Source: Ostrea edulis (taxonomy: Eukaryota). Taken from it: a DNA stretch of 64,000 bases. The position numbers were made by a program, and so were the translations under genes. Of this stretch, positions 12,961-61,025 are shown in pieces; position 1 is the stretch's first letter, and every line of letters begins with the position of its first letter. The notes below the pieces were generated by a model that was not told the DNA's origin, ran no database searches, and saw nothing but the letters and a program-made list of their open reading frames with translations. Location: contig NC_079168.1 in NCBI RefSeq assembly GCF_947568905.1, forward strand, positions 46,190,001-46,254,000. Direction: 5' to 3'.

Positions 12961-15129
12961 TTGTATTGACATCAAATTTTTCAATGTAAGTTATCATTTG
13001 AACAGTCTTTAAAAATGTATTACGTCCAAAAGATATAAAGTATTTTGTATGCCTTTTCCTAATGGCCAGGGTGAACAAAATTAATAGTTTGATATTGACA
13101 TTATTTGTTTATTGAACTCTTTGAACTATCACACGTGGGTTTTGTTGTTGTTTTTTTGGGGGGTGGGTGGGGGTTGTTGTTGTTGTTTTTGTTCGGGGTG
13201 GGGTGGCGGTGGGGTCAGTGCAGTGTCACTCGGCACTGTAAAACGAGTGAAGATAGTTGACCAACTCTTTCAATTCTTTGGTCACCGGTATCAAGCAACT
13301 GTCATGTTAATATTTGATCTCTTCTATATGTAATATAATCTATTCACTTTCTTTTACCAATTGTCCATAATTTAGCACCTCAAAATGGAACAAAAAGTTG
13401 TCAATTTCAAGGTCCTGCGTTATGCTTGGAGTCAAAACCTATACAAACAAAGCAGTGGCTTGAAGAAAATGCAAGAACTGTGCTGATACATATACTGTCC
13501 TTGCATTTTAAAATCCATGTATCTCAAATGATACACATAAATAGCGGTCTAAAACACAAGGCCCATGGACCTGATTATTTGCAATATTTAATGTAAAACA
13601 TAAAATCCCAATTATGATTGCATAATTCAATAATATAACCTACGAGATAAACAATAAGATTGTCTCTTCCTCTGACCAAACGAACATGTTTTTCATAAGA
13701 TGGCTAAAGATAGTTTGTACAAAAAAAGCTAGCACTAAACCTACAGTACACTAAAGTTACAAACGTATTTACGCTACAAATTTACATTTGTATTGTTTTT
13801 GTCTTGCTATTCAATATGTTAGATATATATAATGTCTTTGCCTTTGATATCTATACAAACTGTAATAATAGCCATTTCCTCATGAATGCACTGCAGTGGT
13901 GTGAACAATGCGCGTATGAATCTTGATAAAATGTAGTACATTTATTCTAACGGCTGAGAATTTCGACAGAAATGATAGTAGAATATAAATATAAAAAAAA
14001 TGAATTCCAGTTTTGAAAATACACGAGGGTGAGAACTACAACGTTTCACACCGGCATGCTTTTCATGAAACGCTCACATTTTCAAAATGAAATTTATTTC
14101 TTTTAATATTCCCATCCTGGCTCTGGTGTTCATAGGGTGAAGAAGGTTGAATGTTCATTACATTAGAAAGCTTTCATACATTTCAGTTTTCCAATTTAGT
14201 GGTTTTTGTGAAACAGATTTAAACATCACGCCCTTTAACAAATTCCCTTTCCTCGAAGATATGTTGTGGCTTTGGTTAAAATCTGAAAAGATTACAGACA
14301 GCCGACGGAAAAAGCTTGCTCGAGTTTCAAGCTCAGGCAAGTTAAAAATGCAACATAGACATTGTCCTGAATAAAATGAAAAACAAATTTCCTGTGTTAG
14401 CTCCATGCACGATTCACCGCTATAATGGATAATCAGGTACCGCTTGACCCATTAGAACAAAACCTAGTTAAATTCAATGATACCAATTAAACGATATAGA
14501 TATAAGAGTTTATGATGAAAATTTATCTAGCTAACAAAATGAGAATGGGCCACCAGCCTTCGATCAAAGTTGAAAGGGTTTGTCACACGAAGTATGCATG
14601 TATGTACAGCTAATTAAAGCCCAATTAGTACTATCTATATTGTCCGAGAGAAAGATATCTGAATCTTGGGTAATAGAAACTAAATTAGAATTCATCTTTG
14701 AATAACATAGAAATTTTGATCGGTTAGTTATAAGAAAGGGACAAACACTCTCTTATCGATAGGTATTGATTGGTGTCATTTTCCCAGGAAGCGCGTGAGG
14801 GGAAAACTTTAGAGATAAAACACGAATTTGCATTCCTTGTCAAATAAATGCATGTAATCTCATAACTACGGTTGTGTCACTGGTAGTTATATGCAAGTTG
14901 TTAAAGGTGCAAAATCCCTATAGTAATAATGAGCTGGTATAGCACGTTACCTTGACTTGCAACACTTCCAAACCGGAACACCCAGAGTGTTTAAATAAAG
15001 ATGCTATCTGACGATTTATCTGTAAACCGTTAACAATCCAATATCTAAAATAATCCTAACAACGACATTAGAGCATTTTAATGATTTAACAAAGTGAGGT
15101 AATAGGAAGTTGACATAAACCAACAAACA

Positions 15130-16362
15130 TTAAAATCGATGATGTCTGTCCGGTACATCACGGAGAAAAATCAACTTCTTAAATCGTTTTTGTGCTTTTA
15201 ATTTCATTTTCAAATGTTGATCAGTGTCATCCTGTTCTTTCACACTGTTTCTTTCAGAATGAGAAAATGGTTCCAGTCGAACTAATGGCGTCGCATTTTG
15301 TCCATTCTCCCGACGTAATTTTCGAAACCTTTTCTTGTCGAAGGTTAATAGTTCATCACTAGAAGATTCGTGCTCAGGAATAGCCACGAGCTGAGATTGC
15401 ATATTGATAATGTTTCTTGGGGATTGTTTCGGGGGCGGGGAAGGTAGTGTTCGCTCACTCTTTGCCAATTTCTTTTGTGATGCCACGTCATTTTCTGGAA
15501 TATCATCGAGACCGGGCTTGTTTATCTGCATCCGTTTGGCTCGGCTTGGTCTTTTCTTGAAAGCTTCTACATTTGCTTTGTTAAAGTCCAGACTATCATT
15601 ATTAGTATCAGAATTTTCGGATTCCTGTTCTTTTTCTTGTTCAGAACTCTCTATTGGTGGTAAAGTTACTAAACCACTAAACTCTGTCTGGCCTTTAGGG
15701 GAAGGCGATTCATTAGTGCTTGTAGCTCTGTTGTTTCTAGACGTCTTTCTGTTCCCTGCACCAGCTGAAGGACGGTCTGAAGGTGAAGGACTCTGATTCT
15801 GAACATTTTCCATTTCTAAGTATCTCAACGTGTCCTCTTTATTGCCCTTATTTCTAATACTGAAATCCACTATATCATACAAATCCGACGCGCTCACAAA
15901 ACTAATTTTCACATGATGAGGGTTTTTATTATACCGATCGGGTAGGGACGGGAGAGAAAGTCTGGAAGCTGATTTTGGCTTGTCTCTTCGAGGTTTAGTT
16001 GACTTCGAATTAGCATTCTTGCCTACGAGTTCATCAAACGACGCTGGTCTCCTTCTATTTTTTGTTGAAGGAAACTTTGGAATGTGTTTAGCTCTAACGT
16101 ATAACGGTACTGACTCATGTGACAAAATCCCATCCACTCCAGTTTTTGCGTTTGCAATTTTGCGCATGCGTTCTGTATAAGCCAGCATAGACTCCTTTAG
16201 TCCCCTTTCACGGTTCACCATCCTAGATACAGAAACGTCAAACTCCCTTTCGTAATGCAAAAGCCGCCGGTCGTATTCCTGTTTCAAGCGCGAGATTTGA
16301 GTTGCAGCACGGTTTTCTGTTTGAAAAATTCCAGAACTACTTGAACTAGATGAAGAGGACAT
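15130..16362 (-). CDS. Uncharacterised ~411-aa protein: N-terminal poly-Ser and predicted coiled coil, then a long disordered Ser/Lys/Arg-rich region
   Basis: 1.25-kb open frame in AT-rich DNA; first in-frame ATG at 16362 (MSSSSSSSSSGIFQTENRAATQISRLKQEY...); candidate upstream acceptor ttcttttcag at ~16490-16481 implies a non-coding first exon. Confidence 0.8.
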   Translation of the reverse strand: MSSSSSSSSSGIFQTENRAATQISRLKQEYDRRLLHYEREFDVSVSRMVNRERGLKESMLAYTERMRKIANAKTGVDGILSHESVPLYVRAKHIPKFPSTKNRRRPASFDELVGKNANSKSTKPRRDKPKSASRLSLPSLPDRYNKNPHHVKISFVSASDLYDIVDFSIRNKGNKEDTLRYLEMENVQNQSPSPSDRPSAGAGNRKTSRNNRATSTNESPSPKGQTEFSGLVTLPPIESSEQEKEQESENSDTNNDSLDFNKANVEAFKKRPSRAKRMQINKPGLDDIPENDVASQKKLAKSERTLPSPPPKQSPRNIINMQSQLVAIPEHESSSDELLTFDKKRFRKLRRENGQNATPLVRLEPFSHSERNSVKEQDDTDQHLKMKLKAQKRFKKLIFLRDVPDRHHRF

Positions 16363-19300
16363 GGCCAGAAAAATGACCAATGTTCAAGTGGTGTCTAAAT
16401 CCTTCATTTTACTCTTTTCGCTACTCTGAGTCCAGTATTTTGTATGTTAACAAATCGCTCATCAAATAATCAGATCTGATCTGAAAAGAAATAATGTATG
16501 TTTATGCATAAGCTCATAGATAACAGAAGACATACTTAATTATCTAAGAGAAATAAAGATCGGCAAATATTTCTATTCAGAGATTACAAAACCAGGTATC
16601 CTTTTTCTAAAACTTTAAATGCTTTTTTATTACATTCAAGGTTATGTCTAGCCCTGTATTTGATACAAGTCCGGGTGATGAAGTATATTTCAATGCATGT
16701 TTAATATAATACATGACTGGGGGCCTTATTTATTGGGTGGTGACTGTCTACTTCCCCGTGCTGTTTCACCAACTAATTAGACCACGGAATGCAATTAATT
16801 AATCGTGAGAAAAGTTTGTTCGATATTTCTGAGAAAACCTCTGTAGTTTCTTAATCTTTGCATCTTTCCCATTCATTTGATTAAGAATTCTTTTTTGTGA
16901 TAGGGTCTGGATTCAGTCAACTACTAGTAGATGTGTACAAACTTCCGCAGAGGTATCACAATATTCATTATTCATGACAATACAGTTACACAACTTCGTC
17001 TCTTTGACTAAGTACATCAATGCTCTCTAAGTACTTGCTGATACGATACCTCATCCGGTGGTTTTACTTCATAGAAAAACCTGCAGTTCGAGCTGTATAA
17101 CTTTTCTGAGTAAAATATTTCCCGTTTTTTCTTTGGTTTGGAACTGGGTAAAATGTATTCCAGTAAATTACTAATCAAAATGGATGTTTTGAATTAAGAT
17201 TATTTGTCAAATGACAATTGTTAAAAAATATTATGAGCTTTCTTACAATGAATTAAAAATAATTGTATTCAAGGATGTGAAATGCAGATGCGTTCGTGAT
17301 GTGAAATGTTTGACATGAAGTCAATTCTTGGACATTTTAATTTTTTTTTTTTTACATGATCGAGACCAAAGCAACAAAAAGCAATAGATGAATGTATATA
17401 CCCAGGTAGTAATTTACAGGGACTGACACATTCAAAACATTTACTCAAAGTTAAAGCTCAGTGAGGTCCAAAACACAGTGACATCCAGTCCAATTTTTGT
17501 ATAAACAATGTGTTTTATTTTCCTAAAAGCATTAAATCCGCCTTAACATTAAAATTCAATCGAATAAAAGCCGCTAGATGTGTCAAGTAGACTCTCAAAT
17601 TTCTAGTGTTTAAACTCTCGAGATTTCAAGACAAGTCGGAGAAAGATTTCAAATCATGAAAATATACTCATACGATGCCTTACAATAAAGGACAACGGGG
17701 GGAATTTTAAAACTTGATTATCTCTATAGAACTGTGGGGAAAGACAGTGTTATGAAATGTTGGAATATTAACCCTACTTGTACGTAATGTATTCCAGTGC
17801 CTGTCATAATTACGACTATGTCATAATGACCATTAATTGGCACCAGACTTCCAGAAGCTTTTGTTACACATACAGTATATATCTCTATTCAAGTGCTTCT
17901 TCGTCTAAATCTACAATTGGCCATGTAATGATCCTTCATGCATTTTTAAAAGGTAAATGTCCACCTCGTATTTTAACGATGAAATTATTCTAGGTATACT
18001 CATTTGAAGCCCATAAAATTTAAAATTCTTCCCTCGCCTGATTTGCGCAATTGTTTGAGTTTCCCCAATTTCAGAATGGGAAAATGATATTTAATCCCAT
18101 AGAACTTCGCCTATAAAACAGAAATTTGCTACTTGTATCCACTATTTTATGGGTATTGATTTTTTTCGATCTGTACTTTAATTGAATGCCTATATATTTA
18201 CTTTAAATTCTCTAAATGTAATTTATAGTGAAATGCGCCAAACACCTTTTGGTAAAAATCGTGTTTGTATCCACATGAGCCCGAACAATGTAAATAAAAC
18301 TATTGTTAAATGTGGGGGAAACTAACAGTAAACGAGAATAAGTCATATACAAATAAGACAGGTTACAGTGACGGAATGACTGGTGTTTATCTATGATACG
18401 TGTAGATTCTTTGCACTGTAAGAAAGGTACCCGGAATCAAAATTTAAAAAAAATATTTAGACAGTTTAGTTTGAAGGCTTATCGTGTACTTACCGACGTG
18501 TTTTAACAGTTATTTTAGTGTAATATTTATAGTACTAACACTCGAATTTTTATCTGGATTTCGTTCTATTCTAGATTTTAGAGCATGGGATGAGCATTGG
18601 TGATATTTGAATTAAGACTGCGGTAGATATTATCATTCAGCTTCTTTAAAAAAAAAAATTTCATTTTCATTCTAGTTTTTTGAAGGAGGGGGGTGTCATC
18701 ATGTTTTTTCCCTTCTTGAAAAGATAAATGTATAAATAAAACGAAAACCAGAATTCTCTTTTTATAATGTGTGATAATTGATTGCTTCGCATAGTCTGAA
18801 TTAAAAATTCTGTATAGAGAATATCAAAGTGGCGAAACGATCCTTTATTCATTTTAAATATGTCTGATATTAAACTTGGTTAAATGAAGCGCGACAAAGT
18901 CTATCACCGTCTCTTTAAGAACAACAAAGATATTTTCATGTGTCTGTAGCTAAGTCTTCAACACGGAATGGTGACGATTTTTTGAAATTTGAACTACAAT
19001 TTTACAGGAGATACTCTGAATCACTTACCTTATTCCGAAATCTTCCGACACATGTTACATAGCGATAGAAGAAAAACATTTAAACTCTTCTGAATATGTA
19101 GAAATATACATATCGATACAAACTCTTAATTATTCGCAACTATTGTGTGTTCACTGTCAAGAACCTGGTGTCTTTAAAATACATTTAAAGAACTGGTGAT
19201 TGTATACACAACAGATTTGAGAGAGATAAATACCTCTAGATAAGAAATGCGCCCACTGTCATCAAATCTCCTGTAGCTTGAATATTCAAATCGAGTCCAC

Positions 19301-19974
19301 CGCGATCCGATATCGTGTAGGGTATCGACCAAGCACAAGCATACACGCTGATCTAAAGATAGACCCATTTGATACGTACATGTAGGCCTCTGAAATATTG
19401 ACCTGTACTTCCTTAGAAAAGAGCAATCAAGTTGAAGTTAAGTCTTCCATGTTGTTATGATGCTGGTTAAAGGCTTCACTGGCTTCAGAGGTCTTGACAC
19501 ATTCTGTGGAACCAAGGAAGTAGAAAATTCGCATGATGGAAGTAATAAAAACTCATTAATCGATAAGATGCTTAATTTTTTAAAAGCTTCTATTGAATCT
19601 TAAGTGATTTAAGAAATCTTTAAAAAGTTTGCTGCATGCCTGTAACTGAGTATTTGTTGAAAAGTGCAATTAATTAGTTTTACAAAATTGAAATTGCATG
19701 TAAGTTGGTATTAAGTTAAAGGAGCTAAATGATGAGCGGTGACGGATAGGAAAAGAGAGTTTTTTCATTGCTGTATGTTTCCAATGTGTCAAGAGAAGCT
19801 ACGTGACGTAGGTCGTGGGCCTTGGACGCGTCAAACGTTAATAAAATAAGTAGAGACAACTCCCTCGCTTAACGCTCAGTATTAACACATGGAACTCATG
19901 GGTCTCTGGGACGAGACCCTAAACATGGCAGGCGTTGGCGCGATAAAGAACACTTGACAAAGCACATTGTTCTC

Positions 19975-20145
19975 GTGCAGACTGACAAAGCACAGAGAGT
20001 TCTAGTGCAGACTGACAAAGCACAGAGAGTTCTAGTGCAGACTGATAAAGCACAGAGAGTTCTAGTGCAGACTGACAAAGCACAGAGAGTTCTAGAGCAG
20101 TATGACAAAGCACAAAGAGGTCTAGTGCAGTATAACAAAGCACTG
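19975..20145. repeat. 30-bp tandem repeat (gttctagtgcagactgacaaagcacagaga)n, ~5 copies
   Basis: Direct periodicity; explains ORFs 19896-20172. Confidence 0.93.
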
Positions 20146-20932
20146 ATTCAGGATTTCAAGCTAGACCACTGATTCAGGTTGAAATCATAGTCTTATACCT
20201 GATCTCTCTACACCGTGACAAGTGCGTCATGGAATATGCAGCAGATCAGAACGCCATGTGTACTGAAAAACGTTATAAATTTCTTATATATACATGTACA
20301 TAGATGCAATGATATTTACTATATTCTTTGATTTTATGATTTCTCAATTGACATAAAAGATAAAATTAACGGAAAATGGACAAATGATATGATAAAATAT
20401 GCGCATAACAGATTTTCTTTCAAATATCATCGATAAAAATTAAGTACATATATTATATCATCAATTTATAAACTGACATGTCCGATATTAATTTATTTTT
20501 TTTTACAATTTTTTTTTTTTTTTTTTTAAATTTTTATTATTATTATTATTATATATTTTTTTAATGAATTTTAATTAGACCTACTGTAAGTTAGTAATTT
20601 TTCATTGATATATTTTTCTGTACATAAATTGTTAAATCTTTGAATTGTTTGTGATTGATTTCTACTGACTTCGGGTTATTTACAATGCTTGCAAATCCCA
20701 AAGGGTTTTCAACCCAAAATGAAAGTTTTGTATGATAAAGATGCCAAGAACAGAGATTTAAACCTTTTTAAAGTTAATACAATCCTCGACTTTCATGTAA
20801 AACCACACTACATGTAAGTAATAGAGTCCCACTAAGGGACAGTACTTGTAGTTTGGTTTTCCTCAACAGAGGTCGTGGACTCCTTAGATAAGATCTTGGT
20901 GACTTGTACAGTCGTGTTCTTATCGTGCCAAT

Positions 20933-23900
20933 ATGAAGCTTCACTTGCAAACTTTTGTGTTGTTTTTATGCTGTATTGCAATAACACACGGGATAAGACG
21001 GTAACATTTGATAATTATGCATTTATTCATTATAACTGCTCCAATCTTTTTTAAAAATATTATTATTATTTTATTCATTTATAAAGCGCAAAATTACATA
21101 TAGTTTCTATGCGCTGTACAATGTTTGTGCTGATAATCAATGATGATATACTAATAAAAGACCTGCAAGAACTATAAAGGAAATGATAAAACAATAGAAA
21201 GAATTTAAATAGAACATGGTTGTAAAATGACGAAGTGGTTGACTTTGACTTGACAAGATACAATTGGCATACAGGTATTCGTATGCTGTATCAAAATTCA
21301 GTTTGCAAGAGCACATATTGATGTGCTGACGAATTTTGTATAAATGGATGGATGTATATTGTTAGGCCTATGTTCGGTGCTAACGAACTTTGAGCAGGGA
21401 GGGATCTTTATCGTGCCACACTTGCTGTGACACAGGGCCTCGGGTTTATGGTCTCATCCGAAGGACCACACCATTTAGTCGCCTCTTACGACAAGCAGGG
21501 GGTACTGAGGACCTATTCTAACCCGGATCCCCACGGAAAGCCTTTTGCATGAAAAGTGAAAATAACGAACTGTGATCAATCTCATAACTCTTATAAACAA
21601 TACAAAATAGAGACCCTGTCGAGCGGTCAGGGACGAAAGGGCATCTAGGATCAAATATAAGACTCAGGCTCGTCATGGGATGCAGATTATTCAAATAAAT
21701 TTGTGATAAAAGGTCAAAGGTCAAGCGAATTGGACTTTGATATAGAAAAATAGTTTCAGGACCATGTTTCACCTGAAGTTACCATGCTTTTACATGCAGA
21801 CTTGCCATATGATACCTATTGATTTTACATCTTTCAGATGTACCTAGTTTTATCTGTGTTCTGCGAGGGACTAGCCCCGTTATAACAACTTTAGTTTATA
21901 AGAACATGAATATTCATTATAAATAGTTATTGATGATAATAAGAAATATAAAAGAATATGAACAGAGCAAATATAGTATCAAAAGTCTTGTGTTTCTACC
22001 AAGAACGCAAAAATCCAATTTCTGTATATACCGGTATCCATAATTGTTTTTTTTTTTTAATTTCCTCATGTTTTTCTGTATTTCCATAATTATACAATGT
22101 AGTATATCATATCTATCATATGTTACAGGTAAAATTAGTATGATGATAATGTTTTTAAGAGATACTTAGAGATAGTGTATGATCTATTAAAATGGATGTT
22201 GGGTTTGCTTCTCAGAAAGAGAGAATGGTGTAGACCGGTGGAGACGGACACGCAGTGTCACAGTGGTATCTTTGGAAACTTGTGTCACATGCAAGATGAC
22301 ATGTGCTGTTGCCCGCCCATTTATCCAGGTATGGACTTCAAATCCCAGAATCTCTTACATGTATTTTCAGGTTTTTACATTTTATTTTGCATGACATTTG
22401 TTTAAAAAAATCCGAAACTATTAAGTCAAGAGCAAGAATGTGAAGCATCTTGGAGATTAAGGGTTTTATTCTTAATATTTTTACGTTGACTGTGAAGTAA
22501 GATCAAGGATTTTATTTTAAATACTTTTACATTGACTGTGAGGTAAGGTCAAGGATTTTATTTTGGATACTTTTACATTGACTGTGAGGTATGGTCAAGG
22601 ATTTTATTTTCAATACTTTTACATAGACTGTGAGTTAAGGTCATTTTACAATCCTCGGTTTAATGTTCTAACATTTCTTGCAATTGACACCCATGTCCAT
22701 GTCTCCAAGAAACAGTTTATTTTGCCTTAACGACCCTAAGAAAATACTTCATTACTGGTAATATATTGGTTAATCAATTCCAATAAGCCCAGGTCACCCA
22801 GAACGACCTTGGCTATGGAATTTTTGCCCTTAAATGAAGGTAGTCTACAAGCACGGATTATCAGCCAGGTTTGAAGTATGTTGGAAGTGCCGTAGCATTT
22901 TTTTTTTTAATCAAATCAACGCCTGGCTGCCGTATTACGGGACCTCCGCTTTAAGATCTCATCCAAGGACCCGAAACTCTCAAATCTAAACACAGAGGGT
23001 TTGGCGACTACCTATTTTTACGTCTAGGGTTTGACATGATTTGTGAAATTCACATGCAAGCATCCTAATGAGATGTAGATTTATTCACGTATGCTCACAC
23101 TATGGCTCCTGGGTCTATTGGCTCTCATTACTGAGTGTTAACATTTTAAATAAGAATAATTTAGGCAATTTTTCAATGATCTATCTATGACGATAATGAA
23201 AGGTGAAGATGACGAACAGTGATCAGTCTCATAACTCCTATATGTAAAACTTATACGGTACCAATTTTGATGCACCAGATGCGCATTTCGACAAATAACG
23301 CCTCTTCAGTGATGCTCAAGCCGAAATTTTGGAAATTCGAAATAACAATAAACTTGTAAGAGCTAAAAGGAAAACCAGAGTGCCAAAAACTATATGCAAT
23401 GCAAAATAGATAGTTGGACAAATACGGACCCCTGGATACACCAGAGGTGGCATCAGGTACCTAGGAGGAGTAAGCATCACCTGTCGACCGGTCACGTCCG
23501 CCGTGAGCCCTATATCTTAATCAGGTAAACGGAGTTATCTGTAGTTAAAATCAGTGTTTCAAGAACGGTATGAAACACGTCAGACAGCATTTGACCCAAT
23601 GATAGGGTGTATTGGCAAACTAGATTGTTATAACGACCATAGAATTTGCGAAATGCTGACTTTAAACGAGACTGTTCAAACCCCTGCACTATCAACTTGT
23701 TTTTCGGTAACCTGCCTCGATTTAAAAACTGACCATAAGCAGAATAAGCTCTTGCTTATCGAATCAGTTGAGAGGTATAAACACCATATGCAGGTGATAA
23801 TGGAATATTGCTACATAAATATGGGAAGTTGACGATGGAGAAGCTGAAATCATCCCGTTTGTCATAAAGTAGAGTTGTTAGTTTAACGTAAATATCTACT

Positions 23901-24568
23901 TTCAATAAAATATCTAAGTATGAAGCAGAAGTGGACGACCCTGTGGTGTCTTTGATTTCGAGTTCACAGGGATATATTGAATCGACATATGAATGAAAGT
24001 TATTATTGTTAATAGAGAAAACGATACACCTAATGTCGAATTGAAGGCCACAGCAAGAGATTTTTTTCTTATCACGTAGAAGGTTTTGAATAAATTGATA
24101 ATATATCAAATTAATATGCAAATATACTCATCTTGTTTATAGTATTTGAAAGAAATATTAAAACATCTTCTTGTAACGTGGGTGTTTAAAGAAATTCACA
24201 CGGGATTGAATGTTTTACATGGGGAGATTGAGTGTAGTGACCTTTGGGTCTCTTGTTCTATATAAGCAATATATGTACCAATTTATTTTCTATCCATTTT
24301 TTTGTGGGCGTATATTTGTGAGAAGACTCGAACTTTACAATATTTCGGAACACTTTTGGTGTAATATCTATCTGCCCGTGGGTATCCGGGTTAGAATAGG
24401 TCCTCAGTACCCCCTTGCTTGTCGTAGAAGGCGACTTAATTGGGCGGTCCTTAGGATGAGACCGTAAAAACCGAGGTCCCATGTCACAGTAGGTGTGGCA
24501 CGATAAAGACCCCTCCCTGCTCAAAGGCCGTAAGCGCCGAGCATAGGCCTAAATTTTGCAGCCCTTCA

Positions 24569-24600
<32 letters not shown>

Positions 24601-24821
24601 TATTCTCGAGGGACGTTAAAAAATATTCAATCAATCAATCTTTCTATCTGTATATCTATCTATCCTCACTGACAGGAAAAAGAGAGACAGGACACTGTGC
24701 CATGGTGTGGGATTGGAATTGCCCCCCTCACTGTAGAATGGTGACGGATTGTCAGACAAGATGCCACATGGCGGGACAGTACTGCTGCTGGTGCACCTCA
24801 TCAACTTCACAGCTTAGTTAA
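20933..24821 (+). CDS. Secreted two-peptide Cys-rich precursor A (108 aa), 3 coding exons
   Basis: Exons 20933-21000, 22216-22328, 24676-24821; all GT-AG, phases 2 and 1, frame continuous. Protein: MKLHLQTFVLFLCCIAITHG-IRRKR-EWCRPVETDTQCHSGIFGNLCHMQDDMCCCPPIYP-GKR-ETGHCAMVWDWNCPPHCRMVTDCQTRCHMAGQYCCWCTSSTSQLS*. aataaa at ~24935. The paralog at 30854 has the same exon phases. Confidence 0.88.
21364..21535 (-). mobile_element. SINE (V-domain-like) copy in intron 1 of precursor A
   Basis: Reverse complement of the 5887-6060 sequence. Confidence 0.8.
22480..22645. repeat. 46-bp tandem repeat, ~3.5 copies
   Basis: tacttttacattgactgtgaggtaaggtcaaggattttattttgga; unit starts at 22522 and 22568. 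Confidence 0.85.
23196..24121 (-). mobile_element. Penelope-like retroelement, 3' portion (RT C-terminal region), degenerate
   Basis: ORF 23756-24121: ...ELEIKDTTGSSTSASYLDILL...LYDKRDDFSFSIVNFPYLCSNIPLSPAYGVY.SQLIR, typical of PLE RT C-termini; 3' end ...ttcgtcatcttcacctttc; further copies at 27050-27312 and 27960-28395. Confidence 0.8.
23272..23315 (-). ncRNA. Minimal type I hammerhead ribozyme (PLE-associated)
   Basis: Minus strand GCAUCA-CUGAAGA-GGC(guuauuu)GUC-GAA-AUGCGCAU-C-UGGUGC: intact core, stem I 6 bp (one G-U), stem II 3 bp, palindromic stem III, AUC cleavage triplet. Confidence 0.75.
24375..24640 (+). mobile_element. SINE (V-domain-like) copy ending ~35 nt before the exon 3 acceptor of precursor A
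   Basis: Near-identical to 5887-6147; (caat)n tail. Confidence 0.85.
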
Positions 24822-25059
24822 AGCACAGTACTGCTGCTGGTGCACCTCATCAACTTCACAGCTTAGTTAAAGCAACTTACCTATATTTACTAAACTACTA
24901 GGGAACATGCATACATTTTGAATATTTTTTTCGAAAATAAATCATTATGTATTCAATTTAGTTCACATCCCTTTTTCAAAATGAACATTTCACAGTAATC
25001 GACGTTATTCAATCTAGTTGAAGCAAGGTGTTTTGTGGAGGGGAGGGGGTGGTATTTAC

Positions 25060-25288
25060 TTTTATATGCCCCCGCAATCGGATATTTCGGGGCATATAGT
25101 TTTTGGTATGTCCGTCTGTTTGTCTGTTCGTCCGTTAAAACTATAACCTTGCCATTACTTTTGAATAGTTGGTGATTTAGGGCTTTCATATTTCACAAAA
25201 GTACTCCTTTTGACAAGTCCTTTCCTTAGGGACCAGAATTGCTTTGCTGCTTTACAGGGGCATCAGTGTTTGACGGACCATCTTGTTT
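25060..25288. mobile_element. Short HINE/Helentron-type element, opposite orientation to 11459-12960
   Basis: ttttatatgcccc..ggggcatata hairpin, then a (gtcc/gtct) microsatellite, ending catcttgttt. Confidence 0.65.
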
Positions 25289-25639
25289 TAAAATTGTACA
25301 TGGAAGTCATAAAGTAGCTACGAGCCACAACTTTTTTATTAGATATACAATACATGGTATGCACCTTTTGTATGACATCATAATTATTTAGATATCTATT
25401 GATCTTCAAAGGTGTTTGAATAAAAACTTTACGCTATAATATACTGGTATATACCGATAAAAAAACCCCAAATAGCATAATTAAATTTCATATTCATTTT
25501 AAGATGAGAAAATACTTAATAAATGATTTATTCATAACACAAAAATGATGTAAACGCTGGTTTAATGATCAAAGTATCACCACCACTAATGAAAATTACA
25601 GTCATTAACAGCTCAAGGTCACCCGATTTCAATAGCTCA

Positions 25640-26010
25640 CTATCATTTATCTATCCCCACCCCCAGCGCCAATGACTGCCTGACAATGTCTTCGAATGGA
25701 CGCAATAATGAGTCTCTAAAATTGTCTAGGGATGTTCTACTTCAACTGCAGAGCTTGGGTCGTTGTTGTAGAGTCTGACGCTGCGGTTGTCTTTGGCGGA
25801 TGCGCTTAACCAGTTTGTCCAATGCACTTTCGATAGGGTTCAAATTTGGTGATTTGGATGGCCAAGGAAGAACCTGGATATTGTGTCTTTGCAGAACATC
25901 ACGTTAGACGAGCAGTATGTGGTCTGATGTTGTCATGTTGGAGTACTAATCCGGGATGCTGCATTATTAGAACCACATGCCGCTATATCACTTCATCAAT
26001 ATTAAAACAT
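25640..26010 (-). pseudogene. Tc1/mariner transposase fragment (C-terminal DDE region), frameshifted
   Basis: Minus strand reads QHDNIRPHTARL...LQRHNIQVLPWPSKSPNLNPIE, the Tc1 QxDNxxxH and WPxxSPDLNPIE motifs. Confidence 0.85.
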
Positions 26011-26232
26011 GTAATTAAAATTCACAAAAGAACTATTCATCTGTGAATAAAATTGCAAAAATTACTCGTACATGTAAGTTTTGCATGGAGTATGGATTTC
26101 AATCATAGAAAATAAAAATGGTTTACCATGTTGGTCACAACTTGAAAGATACAGACCAGAATTTAACTAAAGTCTAAACACATCTTTAATAATTTGATAG
26201 TTTGCCATTACAACCCATCATTGGGTTAAATG

Positions 26233-27045
26233 CAGCTGCAATAATGTAGCCCTATCCGAATTTTTTATTCTAATTTTTTCGCGATAGGGCTACAATTCCA
26301 TAGGATATCCGTAATGGTGCAAAATAATTTAATGAATAACCGATAATAAACTCCGTGTATTAGTCCCAAATGTTGTATATACCCAAAGGAATACCAACTT
26401 TGTGCTTGGGCATGTCTAATAAAGTTTTTCATTAAACATCATGTACAGCATGCAACATTCTTCGTCTGCTCCGCCATGCTTGTTATCTCGAGATTTCGTA
26501 GGTGGATCTACTGAAAAACCTAAACACTGACAATCTGCGCGAAAATGTTGTTACTCGAGCCATTCCGACAAAGAAAGGAAAATCATATGGTTGCAGAAAT
26601 AATTTACTCTCTGCTGTTCGTTTTTTAACTTGGTATTAAATCTAAACCTTTTTAATAGCGACGAAATAGCTTTCGCCCCCGTACTTGTCCATTGATGTAA
26701 ATACTACCTTATATGGCATATGCAAATAACTTGACAATCGGAAGTTGTAACTTCAGTACATCAAACATGGCGCACAAATATGAATCGAGAAGTTGGAATA
26801 TATCGAAATTGTTGAAAACGGTAGAACAGAGCCTCACAAATCGTAACTTGCGAATTGTAAATTTATATATTGACTAAGAAACATAGAATACCATTTTATT
26901 TACGTAAGGAAAGTCAGCAAATGTTTAAAATGATCGAAAATGTTGCGGGAGTGAATCACTCCCGCATTTGCCCCATTACGGAGATCCTAAGGAGTTGTAG
27001 CCCTCTCCCAAAAAAAAATCGGAGAGGGCTATATTATTGCAGCTA
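26233..27045. mobile_element. ~810-bp non-autonomous DNA transposon (MITE) with ~27-bp TIRs
   Basis: agctgcaataatgtagccctatccga ... tcggagagggctatattattgcagct. Confidence 0.7.
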
Positions 27046-27049
27046 GGTC

Positions 27050-27312
27050 AAATGCTGTCTGAATTGTTTCATACCGAGTGTTGGGCCGTTCTTGGCACAC
27101 TGATTTTGACTACGGATAACTCCGTTTACCTGATCAAGATGTAGGGCTCACGGAGGGTGTAACCGGTCGGCAGGGGATGCTTACTCATCCTAGGCACCTG
27201 ATCCCACCTCTGGTATATTCAGGGATTCGTGTTTGCACATGCCCATCTTTCTATTTTCAATTGCTTATAGGAGTTATGAGATTGATTACTGTTCGTTATC
27301 TTCACCTTTCAT
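27050..27312 (+). mobile_element. Penelope-like element 3' end
   Basis: Reverse-complement match to 23196-23590 and 27960-28200; ends ttcgttatcttcacctttcat. Confidence 0.8.
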
Positions 27313-27323
27313 ACATCTTCATA

Positions 27324-27376
27324 CATCTTCGCTAGCCAAGGGTTTTCGGACCGAAAACCCTTGGCTAGCGAAGATG
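27324..27376. repeat. Perfect palindrome: 26-bp arms, 1-nt spacer
   Basis: catcttcgctagccaagggttttcgg-a-ccgaaaacccttggctagcgaagatg. Confidence 0.95.
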
Positions 27377-27959
27377 CCTTTCCTAGAGAATACTGAGATG
27401 TGAAAAATACTTGTAAGCACATGAGACAACAAATAAGTAAAACAGTAATAAAAAAAATATGCAAAATGTAGAAAAATTACCGAACAAACATGACAAAGTA
27501 AACAAAAGTTTCTCAGGAGCTTGAATTCCTCAGCTGATATAACTGGAGAGACAATTATTATGAAGAACTCCAGAGATTTTTAAAATTAAGTAAAAATGGT
27601 GTTTAATCATACTCATATAGATTTATTTATTAGATAGGACACATATTTTTTAATTACACATCTGATACAGGACAGCAACTTTTTTTTGTATTTTTAGAAG
27701 ATAGGATATAGGTTTTTTTAAAAAAAAAAAATGAAAATATAGAATGCACCGGTCCCAACGCCCCAATAAATATTGACCGGTCCCTTACGGATTATTTAAA
27801 AAAAACCCAACTAAATAGTCGCCCCACTTAACCTTGCTTGTATTTGCTACTTCTTCCAGCTTTAGTAAAACATTGTATCAAGCGCGATAACTCTAATAGG
27901 TGAATAACAACAAAATCAGTATCTTTTGAAAGTTAGGTTACTTTACACATGTTTATTAA

Positions 27960-28395
27960 AAGGTGAGGATAACGAACAATGATCAATCTCATAACTCATT
28001 TAAGCTATACAAAATAGAGAGTTGGGCAAAAACGGACCCCTTGACATACCAGAGGTGGGATCAGGTGCCTAGGAGGAGACTCCCCTGTCGACCGGTCACA
28101 CCCGCCGTGAGCCCTATATCTTAATCAGGTAAACGGAGTTATACGTAATCAAAATCAGTGTGCCAATAACGGCCTAACAATCGATATGAAACACGTCATA
28201 CAGCATTTGACCCAACGATAGGTTGTATTAGCAAACTAGATCGTTATAACGACCATAGAATTTGCGAAATACTGACTTTAAACGAGACTGTTGGAACCCA
28301 TGCACTATCAACTTGTTTGTCAGTAGCCTGCTTCGATTTAAAAACTGACCATAAACAGAACAAGCTCTTGCGTATCGAATCAGTTGAGAGATGTT
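27960..28395 (-). mobile_element. Penelope-like element 3' fragment
   Basis: Matches 23200-23775. Confidence 0.8.
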
Positions 28396-28439
28396 TTGAC
28401 TCAAAAACTAACACTTGCACAATAGAATCAAACAATTAA

Positions 28440-29300
28440 CTCAAAGGGTGAGTGGAATATGAGTGGCCACATTGTATCGACCAAAGTGTCCGAGGGAATA
28501 CCCGGCATACTAACCTAACCAGTATAACGGGCAAACCGATGGCCTGGCGTTAAGCACCAGTACCGAAAATTCCAAACTATAGAATGAGGGTTTGCTGCGT
28601 TAAGTAGGCGAAATTGTCGATCATACCGGAACCAGCCCGGAGATCGAGAGGTCGCTATTCGGACATCCCTCAGGTATTTTAAGAATTCCTGTGCTATCGT
28701 TCTATATTTCTCCAGCATAATGCTAATGAATATGATGAAGGCCGAGGTCCATTTGTCTATGGTTAAAAAAGTGTTGGACTTTTGCTTGACCAACCACATA
28801 GTGCCATTACACATTTAGATTTTGCCTTGCGTATCAACTAATTCCCTGGTGGATTTTAATAGGAGAGATAAATCGATGGACTGGCCCTCCCAAATTTTAT
28901 TTTTAAGTGACTGGGGGACGTGTGAGTTAATCGGATCAAAAGCACTTGTGATCGTACGAGGTTGATAATCATGAACATTGAAATCGGGGCCCTCGAAATT
29001 AATTATCGGTGCTTGCTGAATATTCGGCATGATAATGTTGCTGAATATTCGGCATGATAATGTTGGACTCGAAGAATTCGAGGTTAGGGGGTCCGGCTTC
29101 GTCCGCGGTCACGTTGATGATGGCCCTAGTTGCTGTCGATGTGGGCCGCATACTTTGGCCACGTGCTTGGTCCGATTGTGCGTCTGGTTGATGGTCGCGC
29201 CTCCGCCTCATCCTATAGACGGTGTAACCTAACCTCGTTCTCTTCTCTTGCGGAGGTTAGGGGCTCCAGTACGCACGGGTGGCATCTTGTCGTAAGAGAA
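28440..29300 (-). mobile_element. DIRS/Ngaro-like tyrosine-recombinase retrotransposon ORF1 (gag-like) remnant
   Basis: ITSAFDPINSHVPQSLKNKIWEGQSIDLSLLLK and TIDKWTSAFIIFISIMLEKY..AQEFLKYLRDVR...W..YDRQFRL resemble DIRS-type ORF1; broken by stops and a 25-bp duplication at ~29013-29062. Confidence 0.7.
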
Positions 29301-30099
29301 AACTGTTGATGGCCGTTGAAATATAAGGAAAGGTGGGGAAGACTGTAGCTAGCGATGCTGCCACTTTGGCGTAAAACGGAAACGGAAGTCTCGTGATGCC
29401 TTAGCTAAGTTGTACCAAATGAAGAGAAGTAATGTTAACTTGTACCATTGTTTAAGAAATATAACCACACATACCGCAATGTGACATTTCGTCACTTAAA
29501 TAAAATTATTTAATATAATAATAAAATAATCTGTCATATTTCACATTTGATGTTTACTGCCGATTCACGATCGCGTCCGACTTGCGAACACTTATTTTAT
29601 TTTACATATGACATCGTTGTACATATCGGAGTTTATTTTTGAATTTTTACAGTTAATGTTTTATGTAACTTTACTTGTTAACAAAGACTACGTTTTGTTG
29701 AAAATAATAGGGGGGGGGGGAGGTGTCAAACAATACAGTATTTATAATTATTGTGCACGTTTAATGCCGTTGATTTTCAATTTCATAGGCCTAGTTTGAA
29801 GCTCTGTCAATGTAACAGTGCTCCATGGTGCAATGTAAAATCAGAAAAGAAAATATAGTGCAACCGTCTTGGTTGTCCCCACACCAAGTTAAATTTATAC
29901 AATATAAACGAATTTTTTTCAGCATGCTCAGTCAATCAAATTGCGTGTTACAAATAAAATAAAATTATTTAATATTCAATAGAAGGGGGTGGGGAACGGA
30001 AATGCGTTTTCTTTGAAAAAATTTCGACTATTTTTAAAATTCTTGTCTTATTTTCGTGAAAAACTTAAAATCCGAAACGAAAGTAATCTTAATTCAATT

Positions 30100-30685
30100 A
30101 TTGCTCTCTTCAATTGAATTAATGATATCTTTAATTCATTTGAAGAGAGCAATAATTCTTTTAAAGAGAGCAACTATACAATTAAAGATATCTTCAATTC
30201 AACATATCCACAATTGAATTAATGATATCTTTAATTGAATTGTTGCTCTCTTTAAAAGAATTAATGCGCGCATTAATTCCTTATACAAAAGCATTGTAAA
30301 TGATTTAAAGATATCTTCAATTGAATTAAAGAGATCATCAAATTATTTATACCGAGCTCTAAATCAATTATTGCGAGCACTATTTCTACTAAATTGATGC
30401 CCTCATCAAATGAATTGAAGAGAGCAATAATTGAATTAATGCACGCATCAAATCTATTATTGCTCTCATTAATTGAATTAATGCGCGCATCAATTGAATT
30501 GAAGAGAGCAATAATTGAATTAATGCGCGCGAATTGAAGCGTGCATTAATTCATTTGATGAGAGCAATAATTGATTTAATGCGCGCATTAATTCAATTAA
30601 AGGGAGCAATAATTGAATTGATGATATCTTCAAATAATTGAAGATATCTTCAATTATTTGAGTTTATGTTAATTTGGCGCTCCAT
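30100..30685. mobile_element. AT-rich, internally repetitive non-autonomous element built from aattgaattaatgcgcgc / gagagcaataatt modules
   Basis: Repeated palindromic modules; ends gttaatttggcgctccata (terminal-like). Confidence 0.55.
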
Positions 30686-30853
30686 AAATCAGCGGTTGGT
30701 ATTTTGCTAATATCGATAATTTATTTCCTTCCAATTCTTTGTTTATTTCTGTCCTATTACAATACACAAATCAGCACGAATCTTTGGAAGTAAAAATAAA
30801 AAATAGGCCAAGTCCACAAGATAGTCTCAACACGTCGACAGAGCGAAAGAAAT

Positions 30854-32087
30854 ATGAAAGCTGCGCAATTTCTTATTTTACTGAGTGTTGTTGTATGGGT
30901 GAAATCAGCTCGATGGTAAGATTACATTTATTCCTTAATGAACATGGGAGGTTTAATGATTTTAATATAAAGAAGTACATATTTCTCTTGATCGTTGCTT
31001 TTTTTGCATACTTTTTAGATAGCATCGATTTGAAAACAGACTCCAATTGTTTGATAAGGAAACGAAAACAAAAGAAAGAATGATATGATATGAAAATACA
31101 ATAATTCAAAGATTTAGTGTGAAGTAGAGGTCCCGTGTCCTCGTTTCCACATTCGACCTTGCGCACCATGCCTAGGTCAAAATGTGGTGCATTTTACCTA
31201 CAGCTGGTGACGTGACGTCTCTGTATGAGCGAAAAATTATTAAATGAAACGGATTTACAACAAACAATTTTTTTTTTTATTTTAAGACAAATCCTGCATT
31301 TACATGTACATGCAACATTTACTGATCGCGGTAGTTCAGTGGTTAGAGTGCTCGCTTTGTGACGGGGAGGTCGCAAGTTTGAGTCCCGCTCCTACAATAC
31401 ATACATCAACCCTAATACGTAAAACTAGGTAGTGGTTGCTCCTTTACCAGGCATTCAAAAGTGAGAATCCCGGGTCTCTCGGATGCTAATAATTTAGGTC
31501 TAAATTAATTGTCTAAATAATTCACCTACAACTGACGACCTACTGATACGTAATATTTCAAGTTTCAGATAGGGTGATATTTTTTTTAAATATTTTACAT
31601 TGAAGAAATCGTGCATTTACTAACTGAAAACTTCATATTGCAACAACAGAACCTTTTAACCCCTTGGTTTTCCATCAAATAAAGATTAGAATACTTTGTG
31701 GTTTATAGGACTCGAGAAGACTGCCACTACGCCGATTCGGAGGAGGTGTGCAAATCTGTTTACCTTGGATATCGCTGCCACTTTTCTGTAGAGAATAACA
31801 GATGTTGTTGTCCTCGTATTTTCCCAGGTTTGTCATCTCGCTTTACTTGTCTCCATAATTTCACACTATATGACTTGATTTAATTAAACAAATGATACAA
31901 GAACAGACTTTAGGAAAATCCTTTCGAATTTCTACATCACGTAAACACTTACGTAGACATTTAGTATTTATTCAATACTTTCACAGGCAAAAGAGCCTTC
32001 CCCTGCTTTGGGAGTGACGAAAGCAGCTGTCGTCTGCCATGTCATATGACGGAAGATGGGTCGTGCTGTTGGTGTCCCCTGGGTTGA
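30854..32087 (+). CDS. Secreted two-peptide Cys-rich precursor B (93 aa), 3 coding exons
   Basis: Exons 30854-30915, 31709-31827, 31987-32087; GT-AG, phases 2 and 1. Protein: MKAAQFLILLSVVVWVKSA-RWTR-EDCHYADSEEVCKSVYLGYRCHFSVENNRCCCPRIFP-GKR-AFPCFGSDESSCRLPCHMTEDGSCCWCPL-G*. aataaa immediately after the stop. Confidence 0.9.
31325..31485 (+). mobile_element. tRNA-derived SINE (head and body) in intron 1 of precursor B
   Basis: A-box-like ggtagttcagtggttagag, degenerate B-box gtttgagtccc, body taggtagtggttgctcctt.accaggca shared with 63780-63810. Confidence 0.7.
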
Positions 32088-32764
32088 TAATAAAATTTGC
32101 AACATGTTATTTGTTAAGATTATTTTCTAGTAGCTATCAGAGATTCATCAGTGCCTTACCTCCCCTCTCTTTTTGGTTTTACATCAGTCGTTGAATCACA
32201 TCATTCATGTTTGTTGATACTACACGTAGGTTAGTAATGTTGCAGTTAAAGATTTATATATCACTTTATTTTCAATTAAAATTGGACAGAAATCAACTGC
32301 ATTTAAACAAATAAAAAAAATCTTGTAATAACGTAATGATCTCGTTATTTCGAGTTAGCACCTCGTTATAAAGATTTAGTATGTTAAGGCGCTATAACGA
32401 ATCAGGGTCTGGTTATAACGACTTTCTTGTGTCGTTCTATAACGAGATAGTAATTTTGTTACAACGATTTAGCATCTCGTTTAAACTACCTAGTACTGAT
32501 ACAATATATAATGAAATATTTATCGTATAATAGCAAGAACATACTCTTGTTTTAACGAGAACATATGAGACGTTATACCGAGATATACAACCGGCCTTAT
32601 AATTTGTTTGTCTACTCGTGTTGAGACTAAATTTACTCGAGTAGTATTTAAGTGTTTCTTTTTCGCACCCGAATACAATATCGAGGCTTCTCTCCTCTTA
32701 ACCTCAGTATATTTATATTGATATTGATACCAAGCAGATGCTGAAGTTCCTCGTTGACAATATT

Positions 32765-32900
32765 CACGTAGTCTTTGGTGATCAAATCAAATCTTCAAAC
32801 AGTCCGTTGGAATTCCCATGGGCGTGAATTGTGCTTCTTTATTAGCTGACTTTTTTTTATAATCTTATGAGGCAGAATTTATTCAAAAGCTTCTCAATGT
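32765..32900 (+). mobile_element. Penelope-like RT fragment
   Basis: Reads approximately Q.VGIPMG.NCA.LLAD....SYEAEFIQKLL, with frameshifts. Confidence 0.65.
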
Positions 32901-34276
32901 ATGAAAAAACAGATCTTGCACAGTACGCCTATTGGAATATGGTGAGAAGCGTGGCTCTCGAGCAGACTTGGGTTGCCTTGTCTTTACATAATTTTATATA
33001 TATATTACGAAAACGATGTGATTTTCAAAACTTGTTCATATAGTTTTACATTTTGAGTGATGTATATCCTTGCTTATGTAGAACAATATCTTCATTGCTA
33101 TTTATGTTTTCATACTTGAAATAACATTCTCTAATCTGACATTAGAATGTTGTCAATTCTTTCATATATGAAAGGTCATTTTTCCTTATTTTTCCATTCA
33201 TGAAATGCAATAGATATCTAATTTTTGGAATGATGATTATTATGTTGAAAGAACTGTTTGTTAAAGATTCATTTGAATGCCTATATTTCAATAAAAGATT
33301 GTTTAAAAAACCCAGCAAAAATAAGAAATAAATAAACAAACGAAAACATGAACGTGTAAATAGAACTATTGAATTTTATTGTCGAAAGAAAGTACAGAAT
33401 TTCAATTTGAAATTGTTAAGCCAGTGTGCTATTTCTGTGTAAGAATTTAAGTCACTGTGCGTGCTTTAATATTTTACTTCTACATTCCATTGTATGAAAA
33501 ATGTATTATTTTAATTCGTTTAACAGTACTGCACAATCATTCTTTTACTACTCTCATGTTCTACTAGATGTGTATAAAGGATTTCTTTTTTGTATCTCAT
33601 TGAAGATGAAGAAACTCGATTACTTTGAAAATTCGCTAATGCAAATAATTCGTATGTTTCATTTTGCATCTGCTATTGGTGAACTAGATAGTGATGACAA
33701 TGTTCAGATGAATATGTTTCTACAGAAAATAATCATAATATAAGTAGAAGTTGAATCAATTCTTGACAACATTTTCAAAAGAGGTGCTGATCATGAAAAC
33801 AAATTGAGCTTGCTTTTAGATATACCGATAAACTCTACCTTATCTATATGGTTTTTGTCTTTAGCGTTAAATGATATTTGTTGCGTAGGACCACTGAACA
33901 TTTATTTTGTTTAAAAAAATCAACGGGACACAGGATTTTATGCAAGTCGATTACTTGTTGAATAATTACAGTATGCACATCCAGGCAACTGTTTTAATTA
34001 CAAAAGTATTCAGTATAGGCACTGATTAAAACGGGAGTTGACCAAAATTAAGTCACGAGTGTGTCAAACGGAAACATATCTAGAGACAATATACCAGTAA
34101 ATGTAATTTCAGAATTAGGAAAGGGGTAAATGCATATTTCGATGTGCGGCTTCGTAATGAAATCTGTTATCGCCATGTATGTGATGGTATAAATTTGTGA
34201 CAAATTCATATTTGGACATTGATAAAGGCGTTCATACAGGTAACAGTAAGAAGGCAGACGAGATTGATGAGAGATC

Positions 34277-49750: not shown

Positions 49751-49795
49751 ACATACACATGGGCACACACACACACACCCGCGCGCACGCGCGCG

Positions 49796-49830
<35 letters not shown>

Positions 49831-50107
49831 TGTTATATGTCATACAAAAAATGGTGATTTTTTCCCCTCCTTTTATATTCATTAAATACTTGGAAAGTTT
49901 TGTTTTGTGCACGCCTCGAATACACCATTTGTTAACTAAATTTAGATGAATGTGCTGACGTCATAATGCTTCCCAGTATGAAGACAATCAAGAGGTATAA
50001 CAGTTGGAAAACAAATTTAATCCATTTAAGAACACCATGAACATACATAATACTTTGCCAAAAAATCCTTTAAAATCCATTTTCCATCTTCATAATTTTC
50101 AGAATGT

Positions 50108-50986: not shown

Positions 50987-51658
50987 TCGCTTTACTCTTA
51001 TCTAATGTATCGCCTCCAAGCAAGCGCACAGTATGTTTATGTTTAGTCGCAAGGGAGAGTGCGTTACGTCGTACACTTTATGACGTGCTGTACATTGTGA
51101 CGTAATAATTCGGTGACGTTTAAGAAATCAGATATTCTCTGAAAGAAGAGCATACACTTTCACCCCTTTCTTGCCCTGATTTTCACTCACAAAGCACATT
51201 CTTCGTGTTATTTGTAATGACAGTAAATGCTTTAATATCAACCATTCTAATTTTTCATTTTATGAAAATAAATTCTTGAATTAAATTAAAGACCATTGGA
51301 ATAAAAAAGAAGAAGCACTAAATACTAAAGCAGCACCCATATCACACGACCTTTCACCTCAGATAAGCTTTTTTTAAACTAGGGTGAAGGGTTTGTTCAC
51401 GAACACCCCATAGGTATTGATAAATTTTCGTAAGACATAAAGCATTCATATGAATATTTGATTTGTTATAGGACTTGAAAGTTTGTTGTGAAGGGGAAAT
51501 TGGGCATATAGTTAAGGGTTCTATCTAAAATCGCATTTAATTTACTGTTGGGTGAAAATAACCAAAACAAATGTTCAATAAAATTATTATCTTTTTCTAT
51601 GTATTGAGAATACGAAAACCAATACAAAGTCTGCAAATGGTCTCAGTAAAGCATTTAA

Positions 51659-59077: not shown

Positions 59078-59159
59078 CAACTGGCTGTTGTAGCCTGCTG
59101 CTTAGGACGCTCGCTTTGGAACCAGGAAGTCCGGCGCCGTATTCAATTTTCGCCACAGG
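59078..59159 (+). mobile_element. tRNA-derived SINE head (5' half of a split SINE)
   Basis: tgtagcctgctgcttaggacgctcgctttggaaccaggaagtc resembles the head at 31325-31375 (gtagttcagtggttagagtgctcgctttgtgacggggaggtc). Confidence 0.55.

Positions 59160-60994: not shown

Positions 60995-61025
<31 letters not shown>

Follow-up and report, generated by a model that had tools for sequence, protein, structure and literature searches.

Introduction

Among the closest described counterparts of the genes considered here are precursors from a survey of the visceral ganglia of Crassostrea gigas, whose accessible portions (PMC8398477) present Cragi-GSWN, Cragi-CCCGS and Cragi-FYFY as small secreted cysteine-rich precursors with basic cleavage sites. 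In those same portions, Cragi-GSWN is described as comprising one cysteine-rich peptide at its N-terminus together with another such peptide that is potentially amidated; some of the C. gigas cysteine-rich precursor families are restricted to molluscs or to oysters, and Cragi-GSWN has gastropod homologues. Our subject is a tandem pair of genes, here called A and B, at positions 20,933 to 32,087 of a 64,000-nucleotide stretch of Ostrea edulis DNA (RefSeq assembly GCF_947568905.1, contig NC_079168.1, positions 46,190,001 to 46,254,000 of the forward strand; hereafter the window, in whose numbering coordinates are given). Like the Cragi precursors, as far as the accessible text describes them, the products of A and B are small, with a predicted signal peptide and basic sites, and two cysteine-rich peptides are encoded in each, as in Cragi-GSWN. 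They differ from Cragi-GSWN and Cragi-CCCGS in having neither a GSWN nor a CCCGS motif and in being found in oysters only; the families of the survey are set apart here by the motifs in its text and supplements alone. An initial annotation of the window had called a single precursor yielding two disulfide-rich peptides unusual. Uncommon it is, but with Cragi-GSWN so described it is not unprecedented in oysters.

The MgCRP-I family of Mytilus galloprovincialis joins a conserved pre-pro region to a hypervariable six-cysteine mature peptide, one per precursor, and is multigene, subject to presence/absence variation and likened to conotoxins, according to the accessible part of its description (PMC4558851). 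Judged against that part, A and B resemble MgCRP-I in their bivalve origin, their short, secreted-type pre-pro-peptide layout and their six-cysteine mature peptides, and depart from it in having two peptides per precursor, purifying selection, one copy each and no sequence match. The K-superfamily conotoxin im23a, of framework XXIII (C-C-C-CC-C), has a described acidic surface cluster (PMC4278219). The second peptide of B shares with im23a the bare cysteine pattern and the acidity. The likeness is confined to the pattern: neither by sequence nor by profile is any PDB chain matched, the organism is non-venomous, the evolutionary mode is another one, and each precursor holds two peptides. SCREPs, in the accessible part of their description, are two homologous, independently folded disulfide-rich domains that remain joined (PMC9885460). 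A and B, too, place two disulfide-rich modules in tandem in one secreted-type product; compared with SCREPs as there presented, however, the halves show weak homology to each other and are linked by a conserved sequence that is predicted to signal cleavage plus amidation.

A and B are not a new kind of system: convertase sites and amidation are textbook features of pre-pro-peptides, and precursors with two cysteine-rich peptides have been reported from oysters. As a family they appear undescribed within the open-access full-text literature, in which we found no relevant paper carrying the A accessions or locus names, or the CCWC motif together with oyster; nor are the motifs CCWC, CCCPP, CCCPR and WCRPV to be found in the text or supplements of the C. 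gigas ganglia survey, as far as these are accessible (PMC8398477). We consider it somewhat better than an even proposition that A and B are an oyster-restricted (Ostreidae), prohormone-like gene pair encoding disulfide-rich signalling peptides that are released by cleavage and amidated.

Gene structure and shared design

Six-frame reading of the window, with inspection of exon boundaries, gives two genes of three exons each:

Gene A, exon 1: 20933-21000, plus strand; ATG at 20933, predicted signal peptide of 20 residues, start of I-R-R-K-R; GT donor at 21001; phase 2.
Gene A, exon 2: 22216-22328, plus strand; end of RRKR, peptide 1, first Gly base; AG at 22214-15, GT at 22329; phase 1.
Gene A, exon 3, coding part: 24676-24821, plus strand; G-K-R, peptide 2; AG at 24674-75, stop at 24819-24821.
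Gene B, exon 1: 30854-30915, plus strand; start codon, predicted signal peptide, Arg, two bases of an invariant Trp codon; phase 2.
Gene B, exon 2: 31709-31827, plus strand; W-T-R basic site, peptide 1, first Gly base; phase 1.
Gene B, exon 3, coding part: 31987-32087, plus strand; G-K-R, peptide 2; stop at 32085-32087.

Gene A (20933-24821) encodes 108 amino acids and gene B 93. All four introns run GT...AG, and in both genes intron 1 is in phase 2 and intron 2 in phase 1; direct reading of the sequence places intron 1 of A within the third codon of I-R-R-K-R, while intron 2 divides the Gly codon of the central G-K-R in A and B alike. The order of elements is also common to both: a hydrophobic N-terminus, a basic site directly after it, cysteine-rich peptide 1, G-K-R and cysteine-rich peptide 2. 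Peptide 1, with six cysteines in the framework C-x8-C-x8-C-H-x5/7-CCC-P-x-I-[YF]-P, has 35 residues in A (C-terminus CCC-P-P-I-Y-P) and 37 in B (CCC-P-R-I-F-P), and the two are 37% identical. Peptide 2 of A has 45 residues and eight cysteines, its CC-W-C being followed by a variable tail; that of B has 29 residues once the terminal Gly is removed and six cysteines, and ends in CC-W-C-P-L-G before the stop. Each half has an even number of cysteines (6 + 8 in A, 6 + 6 in B). The C-terminal framework of peptide 2 in the two O. edulis genes is C-x3-C-H-M-x4/5-CC-W-C, though the 'H-M' of A is specific to Ostrea and absent in Crassostrea and Saccostrea.

The initial annotation had drawn this same design of signal peptide, RRKR or RWTR, peptide 1, G-K-R and peptide 2 in two paralogs, and all of it lies where it was drawn, far beyond chance. 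Its cysteine frameworks and its counts of eight cysteines in A and six in B are borne out by reading, with C-H-M in peptide 2 holding for both O. edulis genes and failing for A outside Ostrea. No further copy of either motif occurs in the window besides a 49-bp duplicate of the 3' end of A, described below.

The hand-spliced A protein matches RefSeq LOC130054546 ("uncharacterized protein", 108 amino acids) residue for residue, so that the splice model of A has been independently annotated. The annotated span of that locus, 3889 nt in GCA_947568905.1, corresponds to 20933-24821, and the DNA is identical over window positions 19933-25821. With exon 3 of A as the query, annotated oyster proteins of 97-106 amino acids with the same architecture are retrieved, and A orthologs carry RefSeq models in C. 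gigas, C. angulata, C. virginica, Saccostrea cucullata and S. echinata. Those of C. gigas and C. angulata (XP_011442045.1 and XP_052701449.1) are named "tyrosine-protein kinase receptor Tie-1(-like)", an identity that we reject: at 106-108 amino acids they give no Pfam hit and contain no kinase, EGF, Ig or FN3 domain. The label is an automatic misnaming, there being nothing in common with Tie-1 beyond cysteine richness. In UniProt, entry K1Q485 has a wrong N-terminus, and the signal peptide is absent from it.

For gene B, no protein counterpart was found by word-index search or by profile search of 1.84 billion representative proteins, the spliced full-length B not having been among the queries. 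Three-exon B orthologs are nevertheless present in five other oyster genomes, and no called gene overlaps B at the five loci examined; B therefore appears to be a conserved gene that is unannotated. Of the initial annotation's suggestion that these are hidden genes, the part concerning B stands, since B is without a protein match, while for A there are RefSeq models already from six oyster species, in which it is either unnamed or wrongly named.

Conservation across oysters

The six genomes compared are those of O. edulis, C. gigas, C. angulata, C. virginica, Saccostrea cucullata and S. echinata. All six carry A and B in tandem, and exon plan, splice positions and intron phases are identical, the phases being the (2,1) that the initial annotation had taken to be fixed; a partial Logan genomic contig carries A in a seventh oyster taxon. 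In each of the five other genomes, B is found on the strand of A and 1-8 kb downstream of it; it has three exons there, AG/GT occur at matching codons, and its Trp (TG/G) and Gly codons are split in the same way. Each locus has one A and one B, with no copy expansion seen. The surroundings are conserved as well: an intronless minus-strand gene of 406-416 amino acids is kept upstream of A across oyster loci, and the downstream neighbours are conserved genes of 241-245 amino acids.

At the level of DNA, a blastn comparison of window positions 20000-33000 recovers five exons at the C. gigas locus and six at that of S. echinata, B exon 1 being aligned in S. echinata only. The ends of the aligned blocks (A exon 2 at 22212-22333, A exon 3 at 24673-24799, B exon 2 at 31707-31829, B exon 3 at 31985-32096) agree with the predicted splice sites to a few bases. 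Outside the exons, nothing matches except the duplication's second 49-bp copy and interspersed repeats.

Pairwise Nei-Gojobori (NG86) estimates of nonsynonymous (dN) and synonymous (dS) divergence were made for the four peptide regions among the oyster orthologs. Between genera, dS exceeds 1 or is saturated and dN is 0.05-0.26; wherever dN/dS is defined it is 0.02-0.25 in all four regions (0.06-0.10 for A exon 2, 0.04-0.25 for A exon 3). Between Ostrea, Crassostrea and Saccostrea, identity in the mature peptides is 73-90%, the signal peptides being the less conserved part. Among non-cysteine columns, 58-73% are invariant over five or six species, and in B exon 2 the invariant columns number 30 of 39 over six species. 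The "highly divergent" inter-cysteine residues of the initial annotation are accordingly a feature of the paralogs, not of the orthologs, among which these residues are well conserved. With DNA conservation bounded by the exons and saturated dS accompanied by low dN, the exons of A and B are functional coding sequence under strong purifying selection. The paralogs are old, their duplication being older than the split of Ostrea, Crassostrea and Saccostrea. The pattern is that expected of ligands matched to conserved partners.

Three further features lie at the 3' ends of the genes:

Perfect 49-bp tandem duplication: 24776-24874, plus strand; 2.0 copies, 100% match by Tandem Repeats Finder.
First polyadenylation-signal hexamer (AATAAA or ATTAAA) 3' of the A stop: 24936-24941, plus strand; pattern scan, consensus match only.
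AATAAA directly 3' of the B stop: 32089-32094, plus strand; pattern scan, consensus match only.

The duplication spans the last 15 codons of A, its stop and 4 bases of the 3' untranslated region. The stop is retained in the first copy, leaving the A protein unaltered, and the second CCWC match lies in another frame; the duplication either arose very recently or is an artefact of the assembly.

The introns of A measure 1215 and 2347 nt in O. edulis, as against 1.17 kb for the whole gene in C. gigas. Interspersed repeats make up the extra DNA in these introns and in the intergenic interval 24822-30853. They include a 46-bp array that occupies 22454-22643, further copies lying at 23419-23774, 27046-27235 and 28081-28390, and, within the A introns, inverted copies at 21362-21447 and 24467-24552; some of the interspersed repeats are common to O. 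edulis and S. echinata. An AT-rich 21/42-bp minisatellite with internal inverted symmetry occupies 30056-30661, ending about 200 bp 5' of the B start codon.

Searches for relatives and structure

Pfam gave nothing above noise for the four peptide pieces, for full-length A or for the neighbouring open reading frames, and sequence and profile searches of the PDB found nothing for peptide 1. For peptide 2, the PDB search brought up WD40 repeat proteins, which we reject: no single stretch passes, and the score sums a chance V-W-D-W likeness over the repeats. A HMMER profile search of the 1.84 billion representatives returned the oyster A proteins and one bacterial protein, a 1107-residue repeat protein (E 7e-4) that we reject as a spurious match. 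Among these representatives there is no relative outside oysters, the search being one of proteins and DNA having been compared at the oyster loci. Nor did profile, Pfam or PDB searches reveal homology to bivalve defensin, big defensin, mytilin, myticin, macin or mytimycin. Named matches to trissin-type or prokineticin/AVIT-type peptides, two known kinds of cysteine-rich signalling peptide, were likewise absent from all search results. The initial annotation had seen no match to the described bivalve defence families, and no relation to them emerged in Pfam, in the PDB or among the 1.84 billion representatives.

AlphaFold2, given a seven-row alignment, models A with a mean predicted local distance difference test (pLDDT) score of 58 and a predicted template modelling (pTM) score of 0.36, peptide 1 being best at about 70-74; the best Foldseek match of this model to the PDB has an E value of 5.6, which is meaningless. 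The initial annotation had proposed both profile searches and structure prediction as follow-up. The former left only oyster A proteins as credible relatives; the latter produced a model, too poor at that mean pLDDT, and with that Foldseek result, to place the fold.

Processing signals and the predicted peptides

Direct reading of the sequence finds hydrophobic N-termini of 19-21 residues in both A and B in all six species. The RRKR of A is unchanged across the six, and the basic site of B reads R/K-W-T/R-R, its Trp invariant, in six. Between the halves, P-G-K-R is invariant in six species for A and in five for B. The codons behind it vary, with all four Gly, both Lys and three Pro codons in use, and in the AlphaFold2 model of A (residues 59-73) the segment falls below a pLDDT of 50. 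Since the residues are invariant despite codon variation, in a segment modelled with such low scores, selection appears to act on the P-G-K-R residues. P-G-K-R is a canonical cleavage-plus-amidation signal, served by a convertase, a carboxypeptidase and an amidating enzyme. B itself ends in C-P-L-G, C-P-L-V-G, C-P-L-V-G-K or C-P-I-G-K, so that G or GK is terminal in 6/6 species, the residues preceding it varying among them; peptide 2 of A has no Gly amidation signal. Read in this way, the conserved basic and Gly motifs of A and B would be cleavage and amidation signals, and three of the four predicted peptides would carry amidation.

All four predicted peptides, in all species, have a net charge (K+R-D-E) of 0 to -4 and an isoelectric point of 4.3-6.8. 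The reduced, unmodified average masses computed for peptides 1 and 2 of O. edulis are about 4031 and 5156 Da for A and about 4374 and 3183 Da for B.

From these motifs we infer secretion, cleavage, amidation, disulfide pairing and a signalling role, along the following lines. The signal peptide would direct each precursor into the secretory pathway, where the cysteine-rich halves would fold with three or four disulfides each. A furin/PC-type convertase would then cut after R-R-K-R in A or [RK]-W-[TR]-R in B, and again after the central G-K-R. A carboxypeptidase would remove the basic residues to expose Gly, on which an amidating enzyme would act to leave peptide 1 with a Pro-amide end; peptide 2 of B would be amidated as well, at a Leu, Val or Ile end. 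The four acidic products, of about 3.2-5.2 kDa, would serve as extracellular signals, whether hormone, neuropeptide or cytokine-like ligands.

Several observations weigh against this prohormone-like scheme. Dibasic motifs are not always cleaved. Gene B is missing from all protein sets searched, the collection searched lists no spliced transcript contig that carries the A proteins exactly, and the predicted structure of A, with its mean pLDDT of 58, is poor. In exon 3 of C. virginica B, moreover, the frame of the G-K-R codons is not that of the CCWC...GK-stop stretch, the interval from G-K-R to CCWC being shorter than in the other five species (locus sequence about 13360-13440). This break could be a lineage-specific change, a sign of another acceptor or an assembly error; it implies either that cleavage at G-K-R is not universal or that this copy is altered. 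Expression in ganglia is undocumented as well, in that the family motifs are not found in the accessible text and supplements of the C. gigas survey (PMC8398477).

A more elaborate form of the scheme would make A and B the ligands in a hormone system that is oyster-specific and born within the lineage. Each precursor would be cut at G-K-R into two amidated, disulfide-rich chains that act jointly, whether they form a two-chain hormone, disulfide-linked or non-covalent, or are two ligands released together. We hold this to be improbable as it stands. Its logic would be analogous to that of the insulin-type hormones, to which the system would be unrelated in sequence and fold. In A and B, Pfam detects no insulin domain, the halves are joined by G-K-R with no connecting peptide between them, and the cysteine counts are 6 + 8 and 6 + 6.

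Alternative explanations

The most serious alternative, which we nonetheless regard as unlikely, is that the halves stay together, either because G-K-R goes uncut in a single secreted two-domain protein of 12-14 cysteines or because the cut chains are held by inter-chain disulfides. The uncut variant could be a tandem-repeat disulfide-rich peptide, or else a matrix or binding protein. Each cysteine-rich half has an exon to itself, the C. virginica B frame with CCWC is without G-K-R, and a class of bivalent tandem-repeat disulfide-rich peptides is known, as described in the accessible part of PMC9885460. The halves also share a short C-H-M-x4/5-CC motif (BLASTP E 0.002), and MAFFT aligned peptide 2 of B onto peptide 1; the halves may stem from an internal duplication. 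The likeness is slight, however: hhalign aligns 11 columns at a probability of 6%, and the 'H-M' of A peptide 2 is absent outside Ostrea. P-G-K-R, for its part, does not vary in either paralog while its codons change synonymously, and the model has this stretch disordered; the even number of cysteines in each half likewise argues for separate chains.

We judge it improbable that A and B are host-defence or toxin-like effectors directed at microbes, parasites, competitors or predators, as the initial annotation had supposed from what it took to be a conotoxin-like or defence-peptide mode of evolution. The layout would suit such a role, the precursors being small, cysteine-rich and of secreted type, with a pre-pro arrangement and amidation signals; lineage restriction is a property of many bivalve effector families; and the pattern of B peptide 2 is that of conotoxin framework XXIII (PMC4278219). 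The evolutionary argument, by contrast, fails on the low dN/dS of 0.02-0.25, the 58-73% of non-cysteine columns that are invariant, the single copies and the acidity of the peptides. There is no hypervariability, most inter-cysteine residues being invariant among genera; copy number is not expanded and synteny is strict. Classical bivalve antimicrobial peptides are cationic, and all of the predicted A and B peptides are anionic. No solved toxin or defensin structure is matched by sequence or profile. The products of A and B are most likely conserved signalling peptides, rather than toxins or membrane-active antimicrobials.

That there are no functional genes here at all, the exons being chance open reading frame fragments, pseudogenes or annotation artefacts, is very improbable: B is in no protein set searched and no Pfam domain is present, but each gene exists in six intact, three-exon copies with conserved splice sites and phases, DNA conservation is confined to exons, dS is saturated with dN low, and A has an independent RefSeq model.

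Other features of the window

The O. edulis neighbour upstream of A is an intronless open reading frame of 416 amino acids at 15130-16380 on the minus strand, of low complexity and rich in Ser, Lys, Arg and Glu, and it is syntenic with the gene of 406-410 amino acids upstream of A in 5/5 other oyster loci. We considered a receptor identity for it and rejected this, as the product is low-complexity and has no hydrophobic segment and no Pfam hit.

Farther downstream, 45287-63540 holds a cluster of 0.4-1.5-kb segments that are 95-100% identical, in direct and inverted orientation; it is either a segmental duplication of recent origin or a mobile element that is young. Three of the segment copies contain an open reading frame of 292 amino acids with no Pfam hit, at 45537-46415 (minus strand), 50108-50986 (minus strand) and 59817-60695 (plus strand).

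Significance

In practical terms, gene B needs to be annotated in oysters, and Tie-1-like is the wrong name for the A orthologs of C. gigas and C. angulata. If the prohormone-like processing model is true, a conserved, lineage-restricted precursor pair would have been missed or left unnamed by genome annotation, ganglia peptidome surveys, and antimicrobial-peptide and toxin screens alike. The pair would then supply four candidate bioactive peptides with unusual cysteine frameworks (C-C-C-CCC, C-C-C-CC-C and an eight-cysteine variant) in species of commercial and ecological importance. A and B would also offer a clean example of a secreted-peptide family, young or fast-diverged, on which purifying selection has since imposed a standstill.

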